Shown here: one piece after another, positions 757 to 13,420 of the stretch
Layout: each line of letters begins with the position of its first letter
Numbering within the stretch: position 1 is the stretch's first letter
Sequence record: PP496441.1
DNA length: 64,000 nt
Strand: one strand, 5' to 3'
The notes under the pieces: generated by a model
The model's database searches: none
Told to the model about the DNA's origin: nothing
What the model saw: the letters and a program-made list of their open reading frames with translations, nothing else
Program-made: the position numbers and the translations under genes

Positions 757-3138
757 ATGGCAGCCAAACCACCTGACAAGATCTCACGACGTAAGCTACA
801 GGAACTTCTGGATCGGAAGGAGGATCAACTCAAGTCTGATCACCGCTCCAAGAAGATCATCACCAAGCTCACGTCGTTCGAGAAGGCGAAAGCCGAAGCC
901 AGAGACATCACTAAGCCCTATCACAAGGAAGTGACTCTGGACGACATCATGGACCTTCGCGGAATGCTGGGCGGCAATCGCGCCATGGCCCCGTTGGAAG
1001 GTCAGTTCCTGATGACACCGGAGGAAGAACAGATCTCGGAACTGGGACTGTCGGAAACGCTGGATGAGATTTTCTCCAGTGGTATCGGCTTGCCTCCCGA
1101 CCTGAAGATCGATGACCGGGATCTGAAAGCGCTGCCCAACGTATTCGAGTGGACTACTTCGAAGATGGGCGCTAAGATGAAGCCGTACGCCCGGCAATAT
1201 GAGGTGATGATCAAGTCCTGCTCTGAGTGGTGCCCACCGTGCACTAAGAAGCGCTGGCCGAAACACAAGATGGGTTTCGCGAAATCGTTTCACTACTCGC
1301 CCGCTCTCCCCGTGGATTTTGACGTAGCCAACATTGATGACTACGTTCAGCACTTGGAGAACGGGCGTTGTCCGTGTTGCAAGAAAAGAAAATCGGAGTT
1401 GGTGCGCAGCGGGCAGTTGCCTCTGGTTACCGAACTGGACATGTGTCTGGGTCAGCGGGCGGGTAAGTCTGCAACGATCTATTCCCTGATCCCCTACCTC
1501 ATTCACCGCTGGCTCAAGGTTCCTTCGCCGGTACAGGCGCTGGGACTGCTGGACAACACCCTGCTGTCCGGGGTAGTAGTAGCATTGACCTATGCCAAGG
1601 CCACATCCCTTCTCTGGCAGCCGATCCACAACGCTATCTCGAACACCGGCTGGTTCAAAGAGTACAACGCGCTGTTGAACCACTACCAAGAGTTCTACGG
1701 CGAGGAATTCTTCAAGCTGAAAGACTCGTTCGTGCAGTACGGCCACCGGAATATGATCTTCAGCCCCTCCGGCCCGAACAAGCGTACACTCCGGGGTGAG
1801 ACCCGTATCTGGACCGGCACGGACGAAATCGGTTTCTTCTACCATGGCGACGACGGCGACGACAAGGAACGTGCATCGGCCAACGAGGTATACGTATCGC
1901 TGGGTAACTCCCTGTTCACGGTTAAGAAGGCAGCGGAAACTGCCTTACTGTCCGGCATGGACGGTATCCCTATGACCCTGATGGCGAACATCTCCTCGCC
2001 ATCTAGCTACAAAGACAAGATCATGTCGCTGATCCGTGAGTTCGAGAACGAGCCCACCGTCGTGACCATGCACTTGCCTACCTGGGAGTTCAACCCCAAG
2101 ACCAGTAAGGGTGACTTCAAGAAGGAATATGCGGCTGATCCTGTCAAGGCAGACCGTGACTTCGGGGCTAACCCTCCAATGTCCGAGAACCCCTACCTTC
2201 CTGACCTCGAACCCATGAAGCGTCAGGTGCTCAAGTCCCAGCGCAACATGGTAGAGTACGAATATAAGCTGATCAAGGCTACCAACGGTGCACCACAGCG
2301 CTATGCCAAGATCAAGCGACTCCGTGAGTTCATGGACAAGGTGCCGAAGCACGTGATGACCATCGACGCCGGGCACAGCAACAACTCCTTCGCCTTGACC
2401 GTTGGTTATCCAGAGATGTACCGAGGGAAGCTTCGTCTGGTGTGCACGGGTGTGGTGGAAGTGGCACCGACACATGGCCAGAACACTATAAACTTCACCA
2501 AGATCGCCAAGGAAATGATCTACCCGCTGATCGAGCACTTCAACGTTGGTCTGGTGGTGACTGACCGCTGGAACTCTTTGAAGCTGCTGCATGACATCGA
2601 AGACGAGTACGGTATCTTCACGTTGCAGTACAGTCTGCGACCAGATGACTTCAACTTTATCTACGACTACTACATGGATGAAGACTTCGCCTATGCCCGT
2701 ATTCCGGTGCCTGAGATTCCCATTGATCAGATCATGGACGTCGATATCGATGAGTACCCGAAGTGCTTCGGTCCCGGCAACAAGACCACGGGCAGGCCAA
2801 TGCCTGTAGCGCACATGATCCATCAGTCGCAAACGGTTCAGGTGAATAGCCGGGGCAGTGTGGACAAAGGCTTGGGTCTGACCGATGACATATTCCGTGC
2901 GTTCAACTTGCTCACCTATGTCTGCGTGGATGAGGAATACGTGGAAGAGTACATGCTGCTAACGGGTTCGGTCGCCGGTGAGAAGCGTGCCATTGGCGCC
3001 ATGGCAAGAGGTGGCATAACTCCGGGTAGTCGGGGCAGTGGTGGCAAGGCCATGACTACCTCCGTCGGTGCGGTCGCGGGGGCGAGCACAGCCTCCGGCA
3101 GCGGCGGGAACGGTGTATTCAGCCGTACGTCCCGCTAA
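757..3138 (+). CDS. terL: terminase large subunit
   Basis: Walker A GQRAGKS, Walker B TGTDEIG, RNase H-like nuclease motif TIDAG; followed by a portal-like gene. Confidence 0.88.
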   Translation: MAAKPPDKISRRKLQELLDRKEDQLKSDHRSKKIITKLTSFEKAKAEARDITKPYHKEVTLDDIMDLRGMLGGNRAMAPLEGQFLMTPEEEQISELGLSETLDEIFSSGIGLPPDLKIDDRDLKALPNVFEWTTSKMGAKMKPYARQYEVMIKSCSEWCPPCTKKRWPKHKMGFAKSFHYSPALPVDFDVANIDDYVQHLENGRCPCCKKRKSELVRSGQLPLVTELDMCLGQRAGKSATIYSLIPYLIHRWLKVPSPVQALGLLDNTLLSGVVVALTYAKATSLLWQPIHNAISNTGWFKEYNALLNHYQEFYGEEFFKLKDSFVQYGHRNMIFSPSGPNKRTLRGETRIWTGTDEIGFFYHGDDGDDKERASANEVYVSLGNSLFTVKKAAETALLSGMDGIPMTLMANISSPSSYKDKIMSLIREFENEPTVVTMHLPTWEFNPKTSKGDFKKEYAADPVKADRDFGANPPMSENPYLPDLEPMKRQVLKSQRNMVEYEYKLIKATNGAPQRYAKIKRLREFMDKVPKHVMTIDAGHSNNSFALTVGYPEMYRGKLRLVCTGVVEVAPTHGQNTINFTKIAKEMIYPLIEHFNVGLVVTDRWNSLKLLHDIEDEYGIFTLQYSLRPDDFNFIYDYYMDEDFAYARIPVPEIPIDQIMDVDIDEYPKCFGPGNKTTGRPMPVAHMIHQSQTVQVNSRGSVDKGLGLTDDIFRAFNLLTYVCVDEEYVEEYMLLTGSVAGEKRAIGAMARGGITPGSRGSGGKAMTTSVGAVAGASTASGSGGNGVFSRTSR

Positions 3139-3420: not shown

Positions 3421-5235
3421 ATGATCCGAATGAACAACCGCATGCGGTTATCAGACAAGAATGGTCGCATGACGACCATCGCGTCACCGCAGAGCATGAG
3501 TGGCAGCATGGGTGCAGGGGGTCACCCCATGACTCGCGCCATGGGTGGCAACGCGTCCACCCGAGACAGCCTGCTCGACGGCATCCTGAAGCTCGACCCG
3601 GATGTCATGCGTCAGATCTACATGGATATGTACCTGTTCGATCCGACCATCGGCGGTGCCACTGACTTGCTGGCCCAGAGCCCGTGGTCGGACTACGATC
3701 TAGTAGACGCTGAGCCGGATCAACTGGACATCTTCTACCGGTCGATGGAACTGCTGAACTACCGAGAGCTGATGCCGGAGTTCACCATCGACTACCTGAC
3801 GCTGGGCGCTGCCGTAGGTACTCCGCTGTACAGCGTGTCGGAAAAGGCATTCACCGACATCATTCCGCACTCCATCGCCAGTATTCAGGTTCAGGAAGTT
3901 CCACTGTATTCCCAAGACCCTGTGCTGACGCTGCTGGTGCCGGAAGAGATGCGCACGTTCGCGACCAGTCAAGACCCTTATGTGGTTAAGATGCGGCAGC
4001 GCATGACACCGAAGATGGTGGAAGCATTCCGAGCGCAGGAGGTTGCACTTGATCCGGTGACCACGCTGTACGTACCCCGCACTTCGTTCTCGACAGTGCA
4101 GCAAGGCGTATCGCTGTACACCCGCTTGATCCCGATCTACTTGCTCGAACGTCTGCTGTACCGTGGCACGTTGACCGAGGCTACTCGCCGCCAGCGCTCG
4201 ACGTTGCACATTCAAGCCGGTGACGATCTGTGGAACCCGGACGACAACGAGCTGAACAGTCTGGTGCAGCTGTTCCTGCAAGCCGAGCAAGATCCAGTGT
4301 CGGCCATCGTCGCTACCCAGATGAACGTGCAGACTCAGGAGATTCGAGCTGCCGGTGACTTCTGGAAGTGGACGGATAACCTGGAGCAGTTCAACGACAT
4401 CAAGCTGCGAGGCATGGGGATCAACGAATCCTACATGTCAGGTGATGTGACCTACGACAACCTGAGTACCAGTGTTACCATGTTCCAAGAGCAGCAGGAC
4501 TCGCTCCGGGAAATGATGGTACGTAAGACTCTATATACCAAGGTGTTCCCGGTCCTGTCGATCACCCACGACTTCCGCCGCAAGGAAGAGTCGAGTCATG
4601 CTCGCCGCGAGATGGCTACGGCCAAGGCTGCACAGAAGCGTACCCTGAACGATTCGTTCGCGTTCCAGGTGAACGACAAATCGTCGCTGGTCATCCCCAA
4701 AGTGGTGTGGCACAAGAAGCTACGTTCCATGTACACCGAAGGTTCGTTCGACATCCTTGAGAAGCTGTCGGAAGCTGGTCTGCCGGTTACACTCCGGGCA
4801 TGGGCCGCTGCCGGGGGTTACGACCTGGATAGCGCCATGCAGGCAATGGCCGACGACGCCAAGCTGCGTAAAGAAGTGTCGGACTTCAAAGCCAAGAATG
4901 GTATTGACGCCGGTACGGAAAACGACTTCAACCTCGATGGTGATACCGAGCTGTCGATGGTCAGGTCCGCGTCCGCGTTGCTGGACAAGGCAATGGGTGG
5001 CCGGGGTATGAAGCCACTGGGTCTGCTGGGTCGTGAGTTCAGTGAGGCGGATTCCGAAGTGGTGCGCCATGACCATTCCGGCAAGCGCGTCTGGGTAGTT
5101 GACCAGCACCGAGCCAAGCGGGAAGAGAACGACAAAGCGATGAAGGCTTTGAAGCAAGCTTCCGATCCAAACTTCCGTGCCAAGACGGTAGCCGCCGTTA
5201 ACCGTAGACAAGGCGCGAGAAAGACTCGCGGCTGA
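3421..5235 (+). CDS. portal protein (putative)
   Basis: 604 aa after terL, helical N-terminus (MYLFDPTIGGATDLL) and portal-like layout; canonical terL-portal-protease order. Confidence 0.75.
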   Translation: MIRMNNRMRLSDKNGRMTTIASPQSMSGSMGAGGHPMTRAMGGNASTRDSLLDGILKLDPDVMRQIYMDMYLFDPTIGGATDLLAQSPWSDYDLVDAEPDQLDIFYRSMELLNYRELMPEFTIDYLTLGAAVGTPLYSVSEKAFTDIIPHSIASIQVQEVPLYSQDPVLTLLVPEEMRTFATSQDPYVVKMRQRMTPKMVEAFRAQEVALDPVTTLYVPRTSFSTVQQGVSLYTRLIPIYLLERLLYRGTLTEATRRQRSTLHIQAGDDLWNPDDNELNSLVQLFLQAEQDPVSAIVATQMNVQTQEIRAAGDFWKWTDNLEQFNDIKLRGMGINESYMSGDVTYDNLSTSVTMFQEQQDSLREMMVRKTLYTKVFPVLSITHDFRRKEESSHARREMATAKAAQKRTLNDSFAFQVNDKSSLVIPKVVWHKKLRSMYTEGSFDILEKLSEAGLPVTLRAWAAAGGYDLDSAMQAMADDAKLRKEVSDFKAKNGIDAGTENDFNLDGDTELSMVRSASALLDKAMGGRGMKPLGLLGREFSEADSEVVRHDHSGKRVWVVDQHRAKREENDKAMKALKQASDPNFRAKTVAAVNRRQGARKTRG

Positions 5236-5259: not shown

Positions 5260-7452
5260 ATGAAACACAATCCACAAGTCACGCGCCTTTCCGCCTTGGC
5301 TGCTGCCGGTATCAACGTCAAGTCAGGCTCGCCGGTCGATGTTGTGCACCAGCACACTCGCACTCTGGGCAACAACATCGACAAGTTGAGCACGCCTCGT
5401 CAGTGGGCCATTGCTCATCTGATGAACGAAGCGGCCGACCTGCTGGTTGTAGAAACTGGCAGCCTTCAAGACGACTACATCGACTACTTCAAAGGTGCAC
5501 TGGAGAAGTTCGGTGTGTCCTCCCCGGCGGAATTGACCCAAGAGAAGGCTTCCGAGTTCTTCAACTGGATCAGCGACAACTGGAAGAAAGGTGAAGGCCC
5601 GAAAGAAACGGCAGGCGCCTTCAACTCCGACAAGTCTCGTCGTATCCTTCGTGATCAGCTTACGGCGGTATTGAGTCTCCCCGGCTCGAAACGTAAGTCT
5701 TTTGTGGCGCAAGTACTAAAGACGGCCAAAGCTGAAGGCACTACTATCCCCGAGCCTCAGATGTATGATGATCGCGGGCTCACTGCGTGGATGAACTCGA
5801 AAGTAACTGATCTTCAGCTCACTCAAGATGTACTCACCGACATGGGTGTACTGAAGTGGGCAGAAGAGTCGGAAGCCAGTGTCGAAACTGCCGCCCCTAC
5901 TGAGCTGCGCAAGGCGTTGGACAAACTCCTGCCAGTACTCAAGAAAGCATGGCCCGCTGGCGTGGACATGGATGAGATGGAAGGCTATATCGCGCTGTCC
6001 GAACTGGATGGGGATAGCCCTGATGAAGCTGGCGCCGACGCTTTCAGCAAGCTCAAGGGTGTGTCTAAGTGGAAGAAGATGAAGGGCAGTGGTCACTCTT
6101 ATGATCGCTGGTCGTTCACTCTGGCCGGTGTTGATGCCGAAGTCGAGTTCGACGAAGACGGTATCGGTTACGTCTGGTTGCCAGCGTCGTTCTATCCGGA
6201 GCAGGCCAGCGTAGAAACTGCCCGCACCCAGATGGATATCTTGGCCACCCGTGTGAGCGACGCCAAGTACGCTCTGTCCATCGCCAAAACGCCGGAAGCC
6301 AAGGCTAAGGCTAAAGACCGACTGACCAAGGCTAAAGCTGCCCAGTTGGCTTTCCGTAGAAAGAGCAAGGCTACGGCGGAAGTCGAAACCGCCAGTCAGT
6401 TCTCCTTCGTCAAAGTCACCCAGAACGGTAACACGTATCGTCTGGAAGCGTCGGACACCGGTAACTTCAAATCCGTCATGATCTGGAAAGGCGGCATGTG
6501 GACGAAGCCAGGTCCGGACGAAGCGTTCAAGGATAAAGAGCCACACCGCATGCTGGGTGCCCTGCGCACGCCCAACGGTGCAGAACTGGCTACCCTCAAC
6601 CTGCCGGAAACCCCAGTGGCAAGCATGGAAGAGATGGCCGAGCTGTTCGGCGCCATGGGTATCGAAGAGAGCGAGATCCGTCGCTTCTACGGCGGTGGCC
6701 CAGAGTGGAATGATCGCAGCGTCTACGATGGCAACATCCCGAGCGTATCCCCCGCTAATCTGGGTGTGAACCCAACTTATGCCTACACCGACATGCACCC
6801 GCTGCGTGCCTATGAGGCGGAAGACACCATCCGTATCAACGGCCTTGACGCCACGTTGCAATCCATCGACAACGGGCAGGCTGTGTTCACAGTTGACGGC
6901 GTAGATACCACCACGGTGCCGCTGGACAACATCGTGGTCGCTGAAGGTGAAGCCTCGGTAGTAGCCACTGCCATGGTATCTCATCGCGTACTGGTCACTG
7001 CTGGTCACGAAGACCTGACTCAGTACAAGTCGCTGCGTCACGACTTCGAGGCTGTTACTGCGAACCACCAAGAGCTGTCACAAGTCAAGGTAGGCCCGGC
7101 GCTGCAAACCCTCGCCAAGGCGGGTAACCGTCGCGCTCTGGTACTGGCCCACGCCGGTGTGCAGCGTATCAACGAAGGTCATGCACTGCTCAAAGCCTCC
7201 ATCGGCTATGGCAAGGAAGCGGCGACCGCCAGTGTCATCACAGAGCTGGCTGATCTGAACAACCTGTGTGGCAAGGATCAAGTATCGCCGCAAGACGTTA
7301 TCGACTCCGCGCCGGTGGTCACCCATCTGAAACAGGGGGAGTTCAAGGCAGACATGCCGGACGTGGTTGACTCTTCGGACTTCGAGCTGAACGACCCGCA
7401 AGCCGAACAGGCGTCCACGCGCAAGAGCCGCTTCCCAAGCCGCAAGCGCTAA
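5260..7452 (+). CDS. mosaic head-associated protein (putative polyprotein with xETA linkers)
   Basis: 730 aa between portal and protease; repeated KETA/SVETA/EVETA/VVATA/AATA motifs; one module shared with 11250..13268. Confidence 0.7.
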   Translation: MKHNPQVTRLSALAAAGINVKSGSPVDVVHQHTRTLGNNIDKLSTPRQWAIAHLMNEAADLLVVETGSLQDDYIDYFKGALEKFGVSSPAELTQEKASEFFNWISDNWKKGEGPKETAGAFNSDKSRRILRDQLTAVLSLPGSKRKSFVAQVLKTAKAEGTTIPEPQMYDDRGLTAWMNSKVTDLQLTQDVLTDMGVLKWAEESEASVETAAPTELRKALDKLLPVLKKAWPAGVDMDEMEGYIALSELDGDSPDEAGADAFSKLKGVSKWKKMKGSGHSYDRWSFTLAGVDAEVEFDEDGIGYVWLPASFYPEQASVETARTQMDILATRVSDAKYALSIAKTPEAKAKAKDRLTKAKAAQLAFRRKSKATAEVETASQFSFVKVTQNGNTYRLEASDTGNFKSVMIWKGGMWTKPGPDEAFKDKEPHRMLGALRTPNGAELATLNLPETPVASMEEMAELFGAMGIEESEIRRFYGGGPEWNDRSVYDGNIPSVSPANLGVNPTYAYTDMHPLRAYEAEDTIRINGLDATLQSIDNGQAVFTVDGVDTTTVPLDNIVVAEGEASVVATAMVSHRVLVTAGHEDLTQYKSLRHDFEAVTANHQELSQVKVGPALQTLAKAGNRRALVLAHAGVQRINEGHALLKASIGYGKEAATASVITELADLNNLCGKDQVSPQDVIDSAPVVTHLKQGEFKADMPDVVDSSDFELNDPQAEQASTRKSRFPSRKR

Positions 7453-7464
7453 TAATCTGGACAG

Positions 7465-7482
7465 GGGGATCGCAAGGTCCCC
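7465..7482 (+). repeat. GNRA-loop hairpin GGGGATC-GCAA-GGTCCCC, copy 1
   Basis: Near-identical copies at 14498 and 48985; no U-tract. Confidence 0.8.
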
Positions 7483-7499
7483 TCATCAGGAACTTGACT

Positions 7500-8894
7500 A
7501 TGACAATCAAGAGTGCTACATTTGCGGTGGCTGAATCTCAAGCTCAAGGCCTAGCCAACTCCATGGGATGGCCGGGTGAGGTAATGGACAACGGTGACGG
7601 CACTGTCACTCTGTCGCCACCCGACGCATGGGACGATGAAGAGAACCCCGGCAAGGTGGCAGCGTCCAAGCTGACCGGTAACAAGGACTGTCACGTCTTC
7701 GCCAGTATGGCGGTACCCAGTGAAGGTGAGTGGATGGCTGTAGTCATTCAAGGTACCCCAGCGCTGGTACTCATCGACCAAGGATCTGGTGAAGGCTGGT
7801 TGACCCTACAGGCCCCTGCGGACTTCGATGTTCCAGAGAGCGTGTTGATTCCTTTCCAACAACGCCTGACCCAAACGGAAACCGCTTCAATGAAGAAGAC
7901 TATCGTGCTGGCTAACGTCTCCAGCGACCCGGCCACTCCTGATTATCAGGAAGCCTCGATCACTGGTGTTACGCCGGAAGGTCACATCTCAGTAGCGTTC
8001 GCTGACGGTGACATCGGTGTGTACCAAGGTAAGTTCGACCCTGCTGGTCTGATGCCAATCGCGGAAGCGGCAGGCGTCGAAGTTGCCAGCTTCAAACACC
8101 ACACCATGGTTCTGGCCAACGTTGGCACTGCGGCAGCACCTGAATACGCCGAAGCTGAGGTGGTTGGTTCCACCGAGGAAGGCCATTTGGAAGTCGCGTT
8201 CGCTGATGGTGACGTGGGCATCTACCGTTCCTTGTTCCACCCTACCGGTATCTTGCCACTGGGTGTGACTGCCGAGACGGCCAGTGTGCTCATCGAGGTA
8301 GCTGCACGTACGGCGATGAGCCCGGAGCAGAAGCTCAAGCGTGCACAGGACCTGCTCAAGCTGCGCATCCTGCACGACAAGTACGAGACCAACACCGACG
8401 CCCTGAAAGGCAAGAAGGGTCCGGACAATAAAGCCAAGCGCGACAAGAACAACGCTGACAAGGTGAAGCTTCGTGCCAAGCTGGACAAGATGGGTGTCAC
8501 GACGCTGCCGAGCAAAGCTCACCTGCAGCGTACCATCAAGCAGCACAGCGACCTGCCGACCCGTATGCGTGCATCGGACAAGAAGCCAGCCGTCAAGCCT
8601 GGGGCTAAACCCGCTGCTAAGAAGCCAGCGGCTAAGAAAACTATCGTAAGCCTCAATGACGATATCAAGCTTGCCAAGTCACGGTTGAAGTCTGCCAAGT
8701 TAAGGGGGGATGAAAGTACCATCAAGCATGCAGAGGCTCAGATTGAAAAGTGGACCGACGAGCTGAATGATCTGCTCAGGGCCAAAGGGCATGATATCCC
8801 TGTTCGCAAGAAACCAGCTGCAAAGGACGCACCTGCCTCTAACACTCGGGAAGTTAACCGAATGGCCAAAATGATGAAGAAGTACAAAGGCTAA
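7500..8894 (+). CDS. head-associated protein with tandem Tudor/SH3-like repeats and Lys/Ala-rich basic tail
   Basis: Two internal repeats VLANV...P.Y.EA.....EGH..VAFADGD.G.Y; TETA/AETA linkers; ATG at 7500 (track uses TTG at 7494). Confidence 0.7.
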   Translation: MTIKSATFAVAESQAQGLANSMGWPGEVMDNGDGTVTLSPPDAWDDEENPGKVAASKLTGNKDCHVFASMAVPSEGEWMAVVIQGTPALVLIDQGSGEGWLTLQAPADFDVPESVLIPFQQRLTQTETASMKKTIVLANVSSDPATPDYQEASITGVTPEGHISVAFADGDIGVYQGKFDPAGLMPIAEAAGVEVASFKHHTMVLANVGTAAAPEYAEAEVVGSTEEGHLEVAFADGDVGIYRSLFHPTGILPLGVTAETASVLIEVAARTAMSPEQKLKRAQDLLKLRILHDKYETNTDALKGKKGPDNKAKRDKNNADKVKLRAKLDKMGVTTLPSKAHLQRTIKQHSDLPTRMRASDKKPAVKPGAKPAAKKPAAKKTIVSLNDDIKLAKSRLKSAKLRGDESTIKHAEAQIEKWTDELNDLLRAKGHDIPVRKKPAAKDAPASNTREVNRMAKMMKKYKG

Positions 8895-8915
8895 TCCCTC
8901 TGACTGGAGCAAGAC

Positions 8916-9674
8916 ATGAACGTGTTTGAAATGATTGCCCAGCAGAACGCCGCGATGAAACCCATCGACGTGCACAAGCTGGTTAAAGGCAAGGATGTAG
9001 ATCCAAAGCTCAAGGAGATGACCACGGCCAAAGTCGGTATGCCCGGCTTGGCCCAGGCCATTACGTTCGCGGAGTGGTTGCCGTTCGCGGCCAAGACGTA
9101 TCACTGCTCGCCGGATCCGAAGGATTACATTCTGGTCCCGAACATCGTGATGCCGTCGGAGATCCCCAACCGGAATGGCGTGGGCTTCCCCTTGCAGCAA
9201 CTGGTACGATTCAACCCAGAGACTGGTTGCCAAGGCTTCCGTACGGCAGTCGGCAAGGGTACGTACGCGGACCACCAGAACAACACCGTCGCCCCGCTGG
9301 CGAAAGGCGTTATCGTGGATTCGTTCATGCGTCCGCTGGAAGGCTTCAAGGGCGGCGTGTGGAAGTTGCTGTTCCTCTTGGCGTACGACCGGTCCAAAGA
9401 CCAAGCGCTCACCAACGCCATCTTGGCAGGCACTCGTACTAACTACAGCATGGGCGCGTACCTGACCAAGTACACGTGCTCAGTCTGTGGCCGGGACCGG
9501 GGCCAGTGTGTGCACTTGAGCGCGCAGAAAGGTTCGGTGAACTTCCGCAAGGTAGGGAACCAGCTGGCGTACTCGCAGGCATACGAACCTATTTTCTTCG
9601 AGACGTCCTCGGTAGAAGATCCGGCATTCGTATCGTCGATTACTGGCGCTGACCACCTGCTTATCACTCGATAA
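8916..9674 (+). CDS. prohead (maturation) protease, putative
   Basis: PNRNG, ADHQN (His), YSMG (Ser), CSVCG/CxH Zn insert, VEDPA; pattern typical of phage prohead proteases. Confidence 0.75.
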   Translation: MNVFEMIAQQNAAMKPIDVHKLVKGKDVDPKLKEMTTAKVGMPGLAQAITFAEWLPFAAKTYHCSPDPKDYILVPNIVMPSEIPNRNGVGFPLQQLVRFNPETGCQGFRTAVGKGTYADHQNNTVAPLAKGVIVDSFMRPLEGFKGGVWKLLFLLAYDRSKDQALTNAILAGTRTNYSMGAYLTKYTCSVCGRDRGQCVHLSAQKGSVNFRKVGNQLAYSQAYEPIFFETSSVEDPAFVSSITGADHLLITR

Positions 9675-9706
9675 GCAGGAACTCCGTAAGAAGTAGAGGT
9701 AACATC

Positions 9707-9865
9707 ATGGGTATCACTACCATTCTCCTGATCGTGTTGATAGTTCTGCTCGTCTGCGGCTTGCCCGTGTTCCCGTACTCCGCAGGTTGGGGTTACGGCC
9801 CGTCTGGACTGCTCACGGTTATCGTCGTTATCCTGCTTATCCTCGTCTTGACCGGACGACTGTGA
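9707..9865 (+). CDS. DUF3309-like small membrane protein (52 aa, not in ORF track)
   Basis: MGITTILLIVLIVLLVCGLPVFPYSAGWGYGPSGLLTVIVVILLILVLTGRL; GAGGT RBS; WGYGPSG signature. Confidence 0.8.
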   Translation: MGITTILLIVLIVLLVCGLPVFPYSAGWGYGPSGLLTVIVVILLILVLTGRL

Positions 9866-9870
9866 CAACC

Positions 9871-9903
9871 GCCCGCTCTGGCAAACGCTGGGGCGGGCTT
9901 TTT
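9871..9903 (+). terminator. rho-independent terminator
   Basis: GCCCGC...GCGGGC stem followed by TTTTT. Confidence 0.8.
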
Positions 9904-9951
9904 CGTATCTGCTAATTACAAAACATGGATAAATAAATTGGAAGATGGGAC

Positions 9952-11163
9952 ATGATCAAATTCGTGGAGATATCCGCACCTAGTTCGGACTTCGCCAAGA
10001 CCCTCAAGAAAGGCATACGGGTCGTGGTCAACATGGGATCTACTAAGGAACCGTCCTATTGGATGGCTACTGTAGCAAAGAACAATGCAGCGAAGGGCAC
10101 CGTCAACCTGAACTTCGATGATGGAGACGTGGCCGAGTACAAAGCTATCAAGTCCAAGGTGGGTATTGTCGGGATCGGAGTTGCCAAAGTCCGCAAGACT
10201 GAAATCCCATTGTCTCAGGTTGGCAAGTGGCTTACTAGTGAGGAAACTAAATCACCGTCCTCCAACCTGTCTGACCCTGTCCAGAAGTTTTTAGCTAAGT
10301 GGGTAGACTCCTTTGATAAGGACGGGGCCAATCCTTCAAATAAGAAATATTTGTTAAAGACAATGAAGGACTTATTACCTAGCATACCCGAAGAGTATAG
10401 AAAACATACGGGTAGCCTTTTCCGAGGGGTTAGGCTACCCGTAGAAGCTGTAACTTCTATCCTCGCGGGTTCTCGACTAAAATTTAAAGATGAATTCATT
10501 TCGTATTCCTCCGATAGAGATGCTGCTGTAAAATTTGCGGCCTATGTAGACTATGATAAAGGAAAAGAACAAATAGGGATAGTAATAAAAGAGGCTAGTA
10601 ACTCTGTTGCGGTTAATATCTTTGAGGTATGGGATAACATCTCGTCAAAGTACAAAGATATACATTCTCAATCATTTGTAGACGAGGAAAAAGAAGTAGT
10701 ACTTCAAAACTCCAACCTGGGACTAGCTACTTCACAGATTGATATGCTACTTATATCTAAAGGTAAAATAAAATCATTAGGGAAGCAGGAGCCTCCCGGC
10801 TGGAATAAGTTTCTTAAATCAAGTGGAATACTTAAAGACATATATTGCATTCCCAACACTAAAGATAATATTAAGGGTGTACAAGAAGTCCTTAGTTTGA
10901 ACACGACAACTCTTATGAATCCGCAGAAGGTGTCGGCTGTACTAACCAAACTAGGATTTCCTAAATCTAACGGGGAAACATTTAGGACGTTGTACCTTCC
11001 TGACCTAGAGCTTTCTATAAAAGCGTCTATGGTTCCTCAAGGAATACTGTTCGAGACTGGTAAGGGCTGGCGATTTGCCAAGTTTGAGTATAAACAGGTA
11101 GGGATAGCAGAGGATGAAGCATCCGCTATCAATTTATTTAATAGGATAGCCAAACAAAGATAA
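9952..11163 (+). CDS. Tudor-like module fused to R-S-E ADP-ribosyltransferase-like domain
   Basis: LFRGV, FISYSSD and EEKEVVL motifs; core about 35% GC; N- and C-terminal modules paralogous to 11250..13268. Confidence 0.7.
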   Translation: MIKFVEISAPSSDFAKTLKKGIRVVVNMGSTKEPSYWMATVAKNNAAKGTVNLNFDDGDVAEYKAIKSKVGIVGIGVAKVRKTEIPLSQVGKWLTSEETKSPSSNLSDPVQKFLAKWVDSFDKDGANPSNKKYLLKTMKDLLPSIPEEYRKHTGSLFRGVRLPVEAVTSILAGSRLKFKDEFISYSSDRDAAVKFAAYVDYDKGKEQIGIVIKEASNSVAVNIFEVWDNISSKYKDIHSQSFVDEEKEVVLQNSNLGLATSQIDMLLISKGKIKSLGKQEPPGWNKFLKSSGILKDIYCIPNTKDNIKGVQEVLSLNTTTLMNPQKVSAVLTKLGFPKSNGETFRTLYLPDLELSIKASMVPQGILFETGKGWRFAKFEYKQVGIAEDEASAINLFNRIAKQR

Positions 11164-11166
11164 TAG

Positions 11167-11196
11167 TTGCACGGGCTGTTTTGGGTGTGATATAAT
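11167..11196 (+). promoter_or_regulatory. sigma70 extended -10 early promoter
   Basis: TTGCAC-18-TATAAT with TGn; near-duplicate at 48392. Confidence 0.8.
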
Positions 11197-11249
11197 AGCA
11201 CCATGGCACTATTCAAGCGCCGCCCACTGTCCCAATGAGGAAAGCAACC

Positions 11250-13268
11250 ATGACCAGATTGACCCTAGCAACCGTCAACGCCGAGATCGCAAAGTCCGGT
11301 GGCAAAGAAACTCTGGTCAAGGGTAAGGACTACTTCTACTGGATCGGTGGCCGTGCCGATGCCGATCCTCAAATCTGGATTTCCATTTACGTTGCTGCGC
11401 TAAACCAGATGACACTGGCCCAGTGGCTGGAAGACTGGAAGCGCAATGACGACCAATACAACAAACCTACTCCCGACAAGGAAACCCGCAAAATGGCTAT
11501 CAGACACGTTCAGACCCTCGCAGCTCCTGCCAAATCCGGTAAGACGGCATCTGCCAACCCAGCACTGGAAGCAGCCGAAGCTGAACTTAAAAAGGTTCAG
11601 AGCATCATTCAGGGTTTCAAAGCCCGTGGCCTGGTCCCTACTTCCCCGTGGGAAAGGAAACTCAAGGACGCTAAGGCAGCTGTGTCCGCCGCCAAGAAAA
11701 AGAAGACCACTGCTACTGCTGCTCCTGCACAGGAGACCGCTTCCCCGGCTACCGACTTCGCCAAGTCGTTGAAGAAGGGCGTTCGTGTACTGGTCAATCT
11801 CGGCAACACCAAAGAACCGTCCTACTTCCTCGGCGCCATCACCAAGAACAACGCCAGCAAGGGTTCGGTCAACGTGCTGTTTGACGACGGCGACGTTGCA
11901 GAGGTACGTGCGATCAAATCCAAGGTCGGCATCGTGGGCATCGCCATCGACAAGGTACGCAAGTCGGAAGTTCCTGCTGCCCAGATCAGCAAGTGGCTGG
12001 CCGGTGCAACGCCAGCGACCAAGGTACCCGTAGAATTCATTCCGGTACCTACTCCGGTAGCTGAAATCCCCGACGCAGGTCTGGAACAGGTTATTCAAGC
12101 CATACTCAAGCGTAGTGTCTCGGGTGCCCTGTCAGTGGAGAAGACGCATAAAATGGACTTTACCAAAGAGGCCATGCCTAAAGCTATGCGTACTAACTAC
12201 CTGAGCGTAGCGAAAAAAGCAGGGGTGAAGACTGCTACCTTCGATAATAAATCCCAGAAGTGGGTACCAGATGGACTTGCAACGGTTCCGGTTATCCCAA
12301 AAGCAGGTCAGGACATCCGCGGCCCGAAGAAAGGCTTCATTGGTGCTAAAGATGATGCGTCTTTAAAAGTCGCGGTGAATGCGTTGAAAGATGCAGGCTT
12401 CCCAAGCCCAGCTAAAGGTAAGGGCGTTACCTACAAGCAACTGACGCCGCAGCTGGCACTGTGCGCCACCATCCTGCCTGAAGGTATCCTGATCGAGTAC
12501 GGGCTGGGCAAAGTCACTGGCCTGCTGTCCTACACCGAGGTGGGTACGGCTACCACACTAGCCGAGTTGAAGTCGATGATCGCCGACGCCAAAGAGATTC
12601 CGGTGAAGGAACCAAAGAAGCGTAACCCGGCGAACAATGCGCTGGAGAACTTCCTTGAGGATGCAAAAGATTCAAAGAAAGGCGTTAAGGCCAAGCCGTA
12701 CAGCCCGGCAGAAGCCAGAAAGATCATTGGCGCAATCAGCGGCTGGAAGGCGTCCAGCGTGAAGAACAAAGCGTCGGCCACGTTCACCAAAGATTACCCG
12801 AACGGTGTCACTGCTACTGCTTACGTCTTCCCGCAGTACGTGTCGTTTGAATACCCACAAGGTGAGAACGATCACATCAGCGACTTGTCCAAGATCGCAG
12901 CTTACATCAAGCAGATCGACGATGATCAAGCAGTAACACCCGACCAAGGTAAAGCACTGGATGCTCTGGCCAAAGCGTTGAAGGGCTGGCCGAACAAGGT
13001 AATCCAACGGGATGCTGACGAAGACAACTTCCTGCTGCGCGGGTTTGAAGATGATGATCTTCCGGCTGATGTGGAGCCAACTGCTGACGCCATTGAAGCG
13101 CATGCAATCTCAATCTTCAAGAAGATGAAAAGCGTTGACAACTTCAAGAAAAGCAAGATGTACCACGGCGACAACACGTACTCCTTCTCGGCGGCTGGCA
13201 CCGTGGGTTACGTGTACTTCGATGAAGATGGCGTCGGCATGGTCCGTGCAACCCCGTTCCAAGAGTAA
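11250..13268 (+). CDS. chimaeric multi-module protein
   Basis: GAGG RBS supports ATG 11250; contains a Tudor-like module, a module shared with 9952 and a C-terminal module shared with 5260. Confidence 0.75.
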   Translation: MTRLTLATVNAEIAKSGGKETLVKGKDYFYWIGGRADADPQIWISIYVAALNQMTLAQWLEDWKRNDDQYNKPTPDKETRKMAIRHVQTLAAPAKSGKTASANPALEAAEAELKKVQSIIQGFKARGLVPTSPWERKLKDAKAAVSAAKKKKTTATAAPAQETASPATDFAKSLKKGVRVLVNLGNTKEPSYFLGAITKNNASKGSVNVLFDDGDVAEVRAIKSKVGIVGIAIDKVRKSEVPAAQISKWLAGATPATKVPVEFIPVPTPVAEIPDAGLEQVIQAILKRSVSGALSVEKTHKMDFTKEAMPKAMRTNYLSVAKKAGVKTATFDNKSQKWVPDGLATVPVIPKAGQDIRGPKKGFIGAKDDASLKVAVNALKDAGFPSPAKGKGVTYKQLTPQLALCATILPEGILIEYGLGKVTGLLSYTEVGTATTLAELKSMIADAKEIPVKEPKKRNPANNALENFLEDAKDSKKGVKAKPYSPAEARKIIGAISGWKASSVKNKASATFTKDYPNGVTATAYVFPQYVSFEYPQGENDHISDLSKIAAYIKQIDDDQAVTPDQGKALDALAKALKGWPNKVIQRDADEDNFLLRGFEDDDLPADVEPTADAIEAHAISIFKKMKSVDNFKKSKMYHGDNTYSFSAAGTVGYVYFDEDGVGMVRATPFQE

Positions 13269-13328
13269 GCGGTAAATGAGCAATAGCTAAGACACGTGTC
13301 CTGCTCCGGTAAGTGTGTCCTAGATTTA

Positions 13329-13364
13329 GCCCGCACTTTCCTCCCCGATTGTGCGGGCTTTTTT
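13329..13364 (+). terminator. rho-independent terminator
   Basis: GCCCGCAC...GTGCGGGC followed by T6. Confidence 0.85.
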
Positions 13365-13391
13365 ACCTGCAAAATATATTTGAAAATAAAT

Positions 13392-13420
13392 TTTACACAA
13401 TGCTGCCCATGTGCTATACT
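13392..13420 (+). promoter_or_regulatory. sigma70 extended -10 early promoter with UP element
   Basis: TTTACA-17-TATACT, TGn, AT-rich upstream AAAATATATTTGAAAAT. Confidence 0.75.

Follow-up and report, generated by a model that had tools for sequence, protein, structure and literature searches.

The gene gp9 (Pori4_00009) lies in a 64,000-nucleotide (nt) stretch of sequence record PP496441.1, referred to here as the 64-kb window, to which all coordinates belong unless another contig is named. The record is the genome of Pseudomonas phage vB_PpuM-Pori-4, a 202.6-kb P. putida myovirus isolated from Estonian river water, to which positions 7400-13400 correspond with 100% identity and unchanged coordinates, and gp9 is annotated in it as a 'hypothetical protein'. 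A preliminary description of the locus had proposed that this frame encodes a recently acquired ADP-ribosyltransferase (ART), slotted into a scaffold for cargo proteins and delivered with the genome. The frame is genuine, being an annotated coding sequence which begins at ATG and runs intact for 403 amino acids (aa). The evidence presented below favours a reading in which gp9 would be an active ART with R, S-x-S and E-x-E motifs (R-S-E type), packaged and injected in the manner of T4 Alt; we put the probability of this whole chain at roughly 0.55. The components of gp9 are as follows.

9952..11163, plus strand: gp9, 403 aa, intact ATG open reading frame (ORF) comprising an N-module, a divergent, predicted ADP-ribosyltransferase domain and a C-module
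9952..10266, plus strand: N-module (aa 1-105), native-like in GC content (0.50) and in GC content at third codon positions (GC3, 0.62), beta-rich, possibly an SH3/Tudor-like barrel
10267..10836, plus strand: ART core (aa 106-295), with R158 at nt 10423-10425, S184-Y-S186 at nt 10501-10509 and E246-K-E248 at nt 10687-10695
10837..11160, plus strand: C-module (aa 296-403), GC 0.404, with a remote similarity between its aa 330-386 and gp10 aa 378-434
9919..11163, plus strand: inserted segment, found in four carrier phages and absent from five others, its bounds fixed to within about 4 nt either way

Predicted fold and putative catalytic motifs of the gp9 core

The motifs on which the preliminary description relied are all present, LFRGV at nt 10417 (aa 156) and EEKEVVL near nt 10684, although FISYSSD had been misplaced near nt 10690 and lies instead near nt 10495 (aa 182-188). 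Inside gp9, at 10407-10443, the LFRGV codons are straddled by a perfect hairpin with a stem of 12 bp and a loop of 13 nt. The R, S-x-S and E-x-E motifs are identical in all four gp9 alleles found among the sister phages. Taken alone such short motifs could arise by chance, and it is their conservation in distant relatives, only 23-29% identical, that makes them meaningful. When 1.84 billion representative proteins were searched exhaustively with HMMER, no more than four relatives of the ART core came up, at 27-29% identity, making five clusters with gp9's own. A word-indexed homologue search returned nothing for the core alone and only the known members for the family alignment. Six columns of the five-member alignment are invariant, among them the Arg-Gly of Y/F-R-G and the first Ser of S-x-S/T, and the third position of the latter motif is S or T in all five members. 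The alignment shows the E/Q/N-x-E motif in three relatives, and in the remaining one, P0004, it was recognised by inspection only, after an insertion; the E-K-E of gp9 appears in the relatives as E-R-E, E-S-E, N-K-E and Q-N-E, the last by inspection.

A structure of aa 100-300 was modelled with AlphaFold2 from the alignment of these five sequences, giving a predicted local distance difference test score (pLDDT) of 67 and a predicted template modelling score (pTM) of 0.64. The putative catalytic residues, R59, S85 and E149 in core numbering (R158, S184 and E248 in gp9), are placed in strands 54-64, 83-87 and 149-153, with a helix (90-98) after the Ser strand. The Arg and the Ser lie inside their strands and the Glu at the start of its own, which is the canonical ART arrangement; F157-R158-G159, on modelled strand 54-64, satisfies the aromatic-R-G context.

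Foldseek searches with the model returned ART folds almost exclusively, in keeping with the earlier assignment. Against the PDB, all but two of the first 44 matches are ART-fold proteins, and Vis, an ART of Vibrio splendidus, takes the top two places (E 5e-4, probability 1.0, template modelling score (TM) 0.44). The best match in BFVD is a protein of Sinorhizobium phage phiN3 (E 3.9e-9, TM 0.57/0.67), and the next are phage proteins annotated as Alt, ModA, ModB and as an ART-bearing minor capsid or head morphogenesis domain, the Alt-annotated models having E values from 1.6e-4 to 6e-3. Searched against PHROGs, the core alone weakly matches phrog_832, 'RNA polymerase ADP-ribosylase' (E 0.0021), a profile matched independently by three of the five family members, and three members weakly match phrog_16619, 'minor head protein'. 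Sub-threshold matches of the relatives include Exotox-A_cataly (E 0.044) and DRAT (E 0.092).

The R / S-x-S / E-x-E triad is the signature of protein ARTs, DarT and KptA belonging to other clades, and the E-x-E motif usually indicates arginine specificity. The predicted fold and triad of gp9 fit the R-S-E clade, but no curated profile of the clade matches it. On the strength of the model, its structural matches and the triad kept in the relatives, as the preliminary description had surmised, the core is likely to be an ART of this cholera-toxin-like clade.

Origin, spread and modular make-up of gp9

The base composition of gp9 changes abruptly along its length. The ART core has a GC of 0.384 and a GC3 of 0.347 and the C-module has values of 0.404 and 0.389, against 0.498 and 0.619 in the first 105 codons (the N-module) and 0.54-0.575 and 0.62-0.76 in the surrounding genes. 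Across the 64-kb window, segments of 570 nt have a mean GC of 0.552 with a standard deviation of 0.031, so that the core lies about 5.5 standard deviations below the mean, and the low GC noticed earlier is thus borne out. The minimum of the whole 64 kb, 0.368, falls at 10471, and no stretch outside the last 300 codons of gp9 drops below 0.44. The compositional junction, at nt 10230-10260 approximately, marks the boundary between N-module and core, and the N-terminal homology to gp10 stops there as well. In the metagenomic ART relatives the GC of the gene equals that of its own contig. Thus the low GC in Pori-4 would reflect transfer from a lower-GC phage and not a trait of the family. A foreign composition of the gp9 core, pointing to recent acquisition, is supported by these comparisons.

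The distribution of the gene among close relatives bears on the same question. GenBank holds eight sister phages of Pori-4, and the locus is variable among the nine, as had been anticipated. Four of them carry gp9 (Pori-4, Amme-1, SKa-4 and Illi-2), with alleles which are 97.5-98.8% identical and intact in frame, while KoPa-5, Voja-6, Aura, Lauda and Peetri lack it throughout their genomes, the site being occupied in them by a short spacer. Within the CEPEST collection Pori-4 belongs to genus cluster G3 of the jumbo phages, and the ART-less Aura falls in species cluster 3A together with the carriers Illi-2 and SKa-4 (PMC7616413). The P. putida prophage P3 is reported to protect up to 1e5-fold, and specifically, against G3 jumbo phages (PMC12894663, PMC7616413).

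Relative to the ART-less phages the insertion comprises the whole gene, N-module included, between a terminator-like hairpin following gp8 and a promoter-like site preceding gp10. Synonymous divergence (dS) is 0.011-0.030 among the four gp9 alleles and 0.07-0.12 in the protease gene next to it. In gp10, too, the conserved C-terminal part has diverged further than gp9, with a protein identity of 86-93%. The lower dS indicates either that the gp9 cassette is more recent than the core genomes carrying it or that recombination has distributed it among them, and together with the low GC and GC3 it upholds the proposal of a recent acquisition. No convincing direct repeats of the kind that would mark a mobile element flank the inserted segment. 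A perfect 11-nt inverted repeat does occur at 9930-9940 and 11130-11140, some 20 nt inside each end, one arm preceding the start codon and the other the stop codon, as could happen by chance in AT-rich DNA. Within the inserted segment gp9 is the sole gene and has no immunity partner, the other ORFs there being short, overlapping, on either strand and unannotated. A tRNA scan found none.

The two flanking modules of gp9 had been described as phage-native paralogs of gp10, the gene at 11250, with the ART plugged in between. For the N-module the paralogy is strong: gp9 aa 9-102 match gp10 aa 165-260 with 63% identity (E 8e-37). A recent duplication of gp10 was rejected as the source of this module, since the copies share just 63% identity. 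For the C-module the similarity is weak (gp9 aa 330-386 against gp10 aa 378-434, 38% identity, E 1e-5) and is restricted to Pori-4's own gp10, in a segment absent from the gp10 of the other sister phages. A native origin of the C-module was rejected on its GC3 of 0.39. Its low GC, like that of the core, and its merely remote likeness to gp10 suggest instead that the C-module arrived with the ART. The picture of a cassette set between two native modules must therefore be abandoned; the inserted unit is the whole gene.

The structure model of the N-module is poor (pLDDT 52) and has five strands, and the matches obtained with Foldseek, Pfam and a PDB profile, all below significance, are mostly Tudor- or SH3-like barrels, with weak hits to Pfam Tudor for both N-module paralogs. 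This is only a hint that the module may be SH3/Tudor-like. A word-indexed search for N-module homologues found them in the sister phages only. No relatives were found when IMG/VR was scanned with gp9 or the N-module alignment, or metagenomes with the latter. Outside the genus, the N-module was found in the Vibrio coralliilyticus phages GR7B and GR11A, which also have the closest protease outside the genus (54% identity in GR11A). In both it opens proteins which continue with an SprT-like metallopeptidase (PF10263, E 2.5e-9 and 8.5e-7). The Vibrio phage genes concerned are the following.

L008:5836-7782: GR7B_00088, N-module and SprT-like domain; adjoins a gp5 homologue and connector genes
L013:5001-6836: GR11A_00024, N-module and SprT-like peptidase
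L013:3468-4946: GR11A_00025, one N-module; the gene directly upstream of the SprT-like protein, in the position taken by the gp5 homologue in GR7B
L016:18344-20149, minus strand: GR7B_00083, 602 aa, two tandem N-modules at its start followed by an unknown domain; adjoins a Nudix gene

In the region L008:5836-5952, GR7B_00088 as annotated begins about 59 nt inside the preceding gene. An internal Met at codon 40 gives an N-terminus aligned with those of gp9 and GR11A_00024, so that the true start probably lies further downstream than annotated.

The N-module is thus fused to unrelated enzymes, with two identifiable kinds of cargo so far (ART and SprT-like). The likeness to a polymorphic toxin holds insofar as one shared carrier module would be joined to different enzymes; it fails on the immunity gene and on the MuF domain, neither of which gp9 possesses. 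The catalytic domain for its part has also changed partners. P0002, its closest relative, has its own unrelated N-terminal extension of about 130 aa (aa 1-133, L014:8001-8400) where gp9 has the N-module, and thus in different phages the catalytic domain is joined to different N-terminal parts.

Exchange of this kind extends to the neighbouring genes. Among the nine phages gp5, gp6 and gp10 keep their ends (86-100% identical) while their centres have been swapped, inserted or deleted, and in the seven phages examined for length the proteins range over 475-730, 464-734 and 550-702 aa, respectively. Searched with Pfam for other cargo domains, the sister-phage versions of these three proteins gave no recognisable domain in their variable parts. 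The group of proteins around the prohead protease (gp5, gp6, gp10) is, as these comparisons indicate, a hot spot of domain shuffling. The first residues of gp10 (aa 1-73, window 11250-11470; phrog_9154) form a further short shared module: short segments with 43-53% identity to them occur both in Serratia phages of about 158-160 kb (the phiMAM1 group) and in Xanthomonas and Erwinia phages of about 227 kb.

Head-gene context and possible delivery

The position of gp9 is right after the prohead protease gene in the head-morphogenesis module, where the order of genes is TerL (757-3138), portal (3421-5235), gp5, gp6, prohead protease, gp8, gp9 and gp10. The kin of the Pori-4 protease are the 'prohead core protease' of Erwinia, Dickeya, Ralstonia phiRSL1, Xanthomonas and Vibrio jumbo phages. 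The features surrounding gp9 are these.

5260-7452 of the window: gp5
7500..8894, plus strand: gp6, 464 aa, with a distant N-module copy at nt 8088-8267 (31% identity, E 0.002)
8916..9674, plus strand: head maturation (prohead core) protease
9707..9865, plus strand: gp8, 52 aa, with two hydrophobic segments, between protease and gp9
9871..9905, plus strand: intrinsic-terminator-like hairpin (9871-9898) and T-run, 3' of gp8 and directly 5' of gp9
11167..11196, plus strand: promoter-like TTGCAC-N18-TATAAT, 5' of gp10, starting 4 nt past the gp9 stop codon
11250..13268, plus strand: gp10, 672 aa, with an N-module copy at nt 11742-11999 and a C-module-like stretch at nt 12381-12551

The small gene gp8 is conserved throughout the sister phages, where it separates the protease from the site of the ART, and is an odd companion for a head module. 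The hairpin after gp8 and the promoter-like site before gp10 are both conserved in the ART-less phages; the latter scores below the threshold of the sigma-70 scan, and no second copy of its motif was found as a repeat across the 64-kb window.

Two of the relatives share this setting. P0002 lies directly downstream of a protease homologue (37.5% identity) on a 150-kb contig which also has homologues of TerL (34%) and portal (32%), and its position is syntenic with that of gp9. P0003, on another contig, is found between TerL (33%) and portal (31%) homologues. Phage ARTs in general are often encoded near head genes and have been judged likely to be packaged, about 44% of them occurring in such contexts (PMC9503650). 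In the case of T4 Alt the prohead protease cuts the protein at both ends, the N-terminal cut falling after residue 6, and the proteases of giant phages cut after small-x-E (PMC5694885). In gp9 a Glu at position 6 (F-V-E, aa 4-6) aligns with the A-Q-E preceding the N-module in gp10, and x-x-E sites are common by chance. Because the Vibrio homologues are without it, this alignment, and with it the trimming of gp9 at Glu-6, is suggestive only.

These observations can be assembled into the following scheme, in which packaging, processing and injection are argued from gene position, from the sharing of the N-module and by analogy with T4 Alt. A low-GC ART with its C-module would have come from a lower-GC related phage and been joined in frame to an N-terminal module of native type. 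The gene would then have spread recently by recombination among co-circulating P. putida jumbo phages. Its product, an active mono-ADP-ribosyltransferase of a rare phage-borne sequence family, would be made with the head proteins, be taken into the prohead by means of the N-module and possibly be trimmed there, after a Glu, by the prohead protease. On leaving the particle together with the DNA, gp9 would use host NAD+ to ADP-ribosylate arginines of one or more host proteins, and might do so as soon as infection begins, in the way that T4 Alt modifies RNA polymerase. For packaging as such we see close to an even chance, perhaps slightly under it. A more general proposal, which is tentative and on present evidence rather doubtful, is that the N-module might be an unrecognised head-loading adaptor (for capsid targeting or ejection) of this clade of phages of about 200 kb, one that would enable enzymatic cargo such as ART or SprT-like domains to be swapped into the particle; gp9 would then be a freshly captured cargo, still spreading.

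A number of results weigh against parts of this scheme. With regard to the fold, Pfam and NCBIfam (both with E up to 10) and PHROGs returned no ART family for full-length gp9, and neither phmmer nor a profile search against PDB sequences returned an ART; the model, built from five sequences and reaching a TM of about 0.44 to solved ARTs, is of moderate confidence. With regard to loading, Foldseek gave no significant structural match for the N-module model, the N-module proteins of the Vibrio phages do not share the Glu-6 site, and a literature search found neither virion proteomics nor expression data for G3 phages. Co-expression with the head genes is not favoured by the terminator directly upstream of gp9, for which no sigma-70-like promoter was recognised. 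A further relative, P0005, adjoins topoisomerase genes on a phage-like contig, and not head genes. Finally, the ratio of nonsynonymous to synonymous divergence (dN/dS) among the gp9 alleles is 0.2-0.8 on very few changes, so that constraint is not demonstrated.

The best of the alternative explanations, which we nevertheless regard as unlikely, is that gp9 is an active ART made in the infected cell, as T4 ModA and ModB are, and not packaged, its place in the head module being accidental. The transcription signals can be read in this way, as can the landing of the cassette in an intergenic gap between two of them, a typical site for accessory genes; the ModA and ModB annotations among the BFVD neighbours and the location of P0005 among replication genes point in the same direction. 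An accidental position, however, leaves out of account the N-module common to gp9 and to gp10 and gp6 of the head module, the two independent relatives inside modules of TerL, portal and protease, and the link between head-gene context and packaging (PMC9503650).

An enzyme with an ART fold might also act on DNA or RNA, or hydrolyse NAD+, for example in counter-defence or as a marker on the phage genome, and the N-module would in that event bind nucleic acid. The Foldseek list against the PDB does include KptA/Tpt1 and DarT (E 0.004-0.05), the weak, non-significant matches of the N-module are mostly to SH3/Tudor-like barrels, and the module is fused in the Vibrio phages to SprT-like domains, for which DNA-protein adducts are a frequent substrate. 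Protein-arginine ARTs are nevertheless the best structural matches (Vis and the Alt type), the triad is that of protein ARTs, and DarT and KptA, from other clades, align with a TM of only 0.2-0.3, so that a non-protein substrate appears improbable. Least probable of all is a dead or decaying passenger, whether a head protein paralog with an ART-like fold or a gene being lost: five of the nine phages do without gp9, its dN/dS is relatively high and no curated profile matches it, but the frame is intact and the three catalytic motifs are invariant in the four carriers, and the motifs are kept in relatives only 23-29% identical.

Relation to known systems

Some phages use head-delivered ARTs to reprogramme the host before phage gene expression begins. 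To our knowledge T4 Alt is almost the only such enzyme to have been studied. In function, gp9 as proposed here looks like T4 Alt or the MuF-ART and polyvalent proteins of phages. Like T4 Alt, which is of the Alt/VIP2 family, gp9 has the predicted fold of a phage R-S-E-type ART and is encoded near head morphogenesis genes. Both have extra modules flanking the catalytic domain, those of Alt being trimmed at both ends (PMC5694885). The direct links are weak, consisting of phrog_832 (E 0.002) and the Alt-annotated BFVD models. Unlike Alt, gp9 is a much smaller protein of 403 aa with no Pfam hit, and no significant sequence homology joins the two. Furthermore, in place of the short targeting peptide of T4 Alt, gp9 has a folded N-module of about 100 aa which it shares with gp10 and gp6.

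The T4 enzymes ModA and ModB are, as gp9 is predicted to be, small phage ARTs of the R-S-E type, and their annotations appear among its BFVD neighbours. They differ from gp9 in being expressed after infection and encoded outside the head module, and in having no flanking modules. The closest solved structure is that of Vis from Vibrio splendidus (PDB 4xzk, 4y1w), with 168-175 aligned columns at 15-17% identity and a TM of 0.44; Vis, by contrast, is a secreted bacterial toxin without phage context. The best structural neighbour of the gp9 core, A0A0F6WCN0 of phiN3, is a stand-alone domain of 167 aa without flanking modules. Three of the five family members match the phrog_27460 profile, which is 167 residues long, and a link between this profile and A0A0F6WCN0 is only suggested, by the equal length.

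The MuF-ART fusions and polyvalent proteins of phages, described by Iyer, Aravind and colleagues, offer a parallel in architecture, for in these too a head-associated module carries an enzymatic effector, ARTs being the commonest cargo (PMC9503650). The parallel is not complete. Neither Pfam nor PHROGs revealed a MuF or portal-type head-anchoring domain in gp9, which has instead a different small beta-rich module and a single effector in place of several.

Head-associated phage ARTs are thus already known, and what is new here is the sequence family, its flanking architecture and a documented recent spread. The gp9 family is one that curated profiles miss and that carries a different putative carrier module. 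The nine sequenced and cultivable P. putida phages with and without gp9 form a natural comparison set, including presence and absence within one species, so that existing isolates could reveal what the gene does and whether its product is in the virion.

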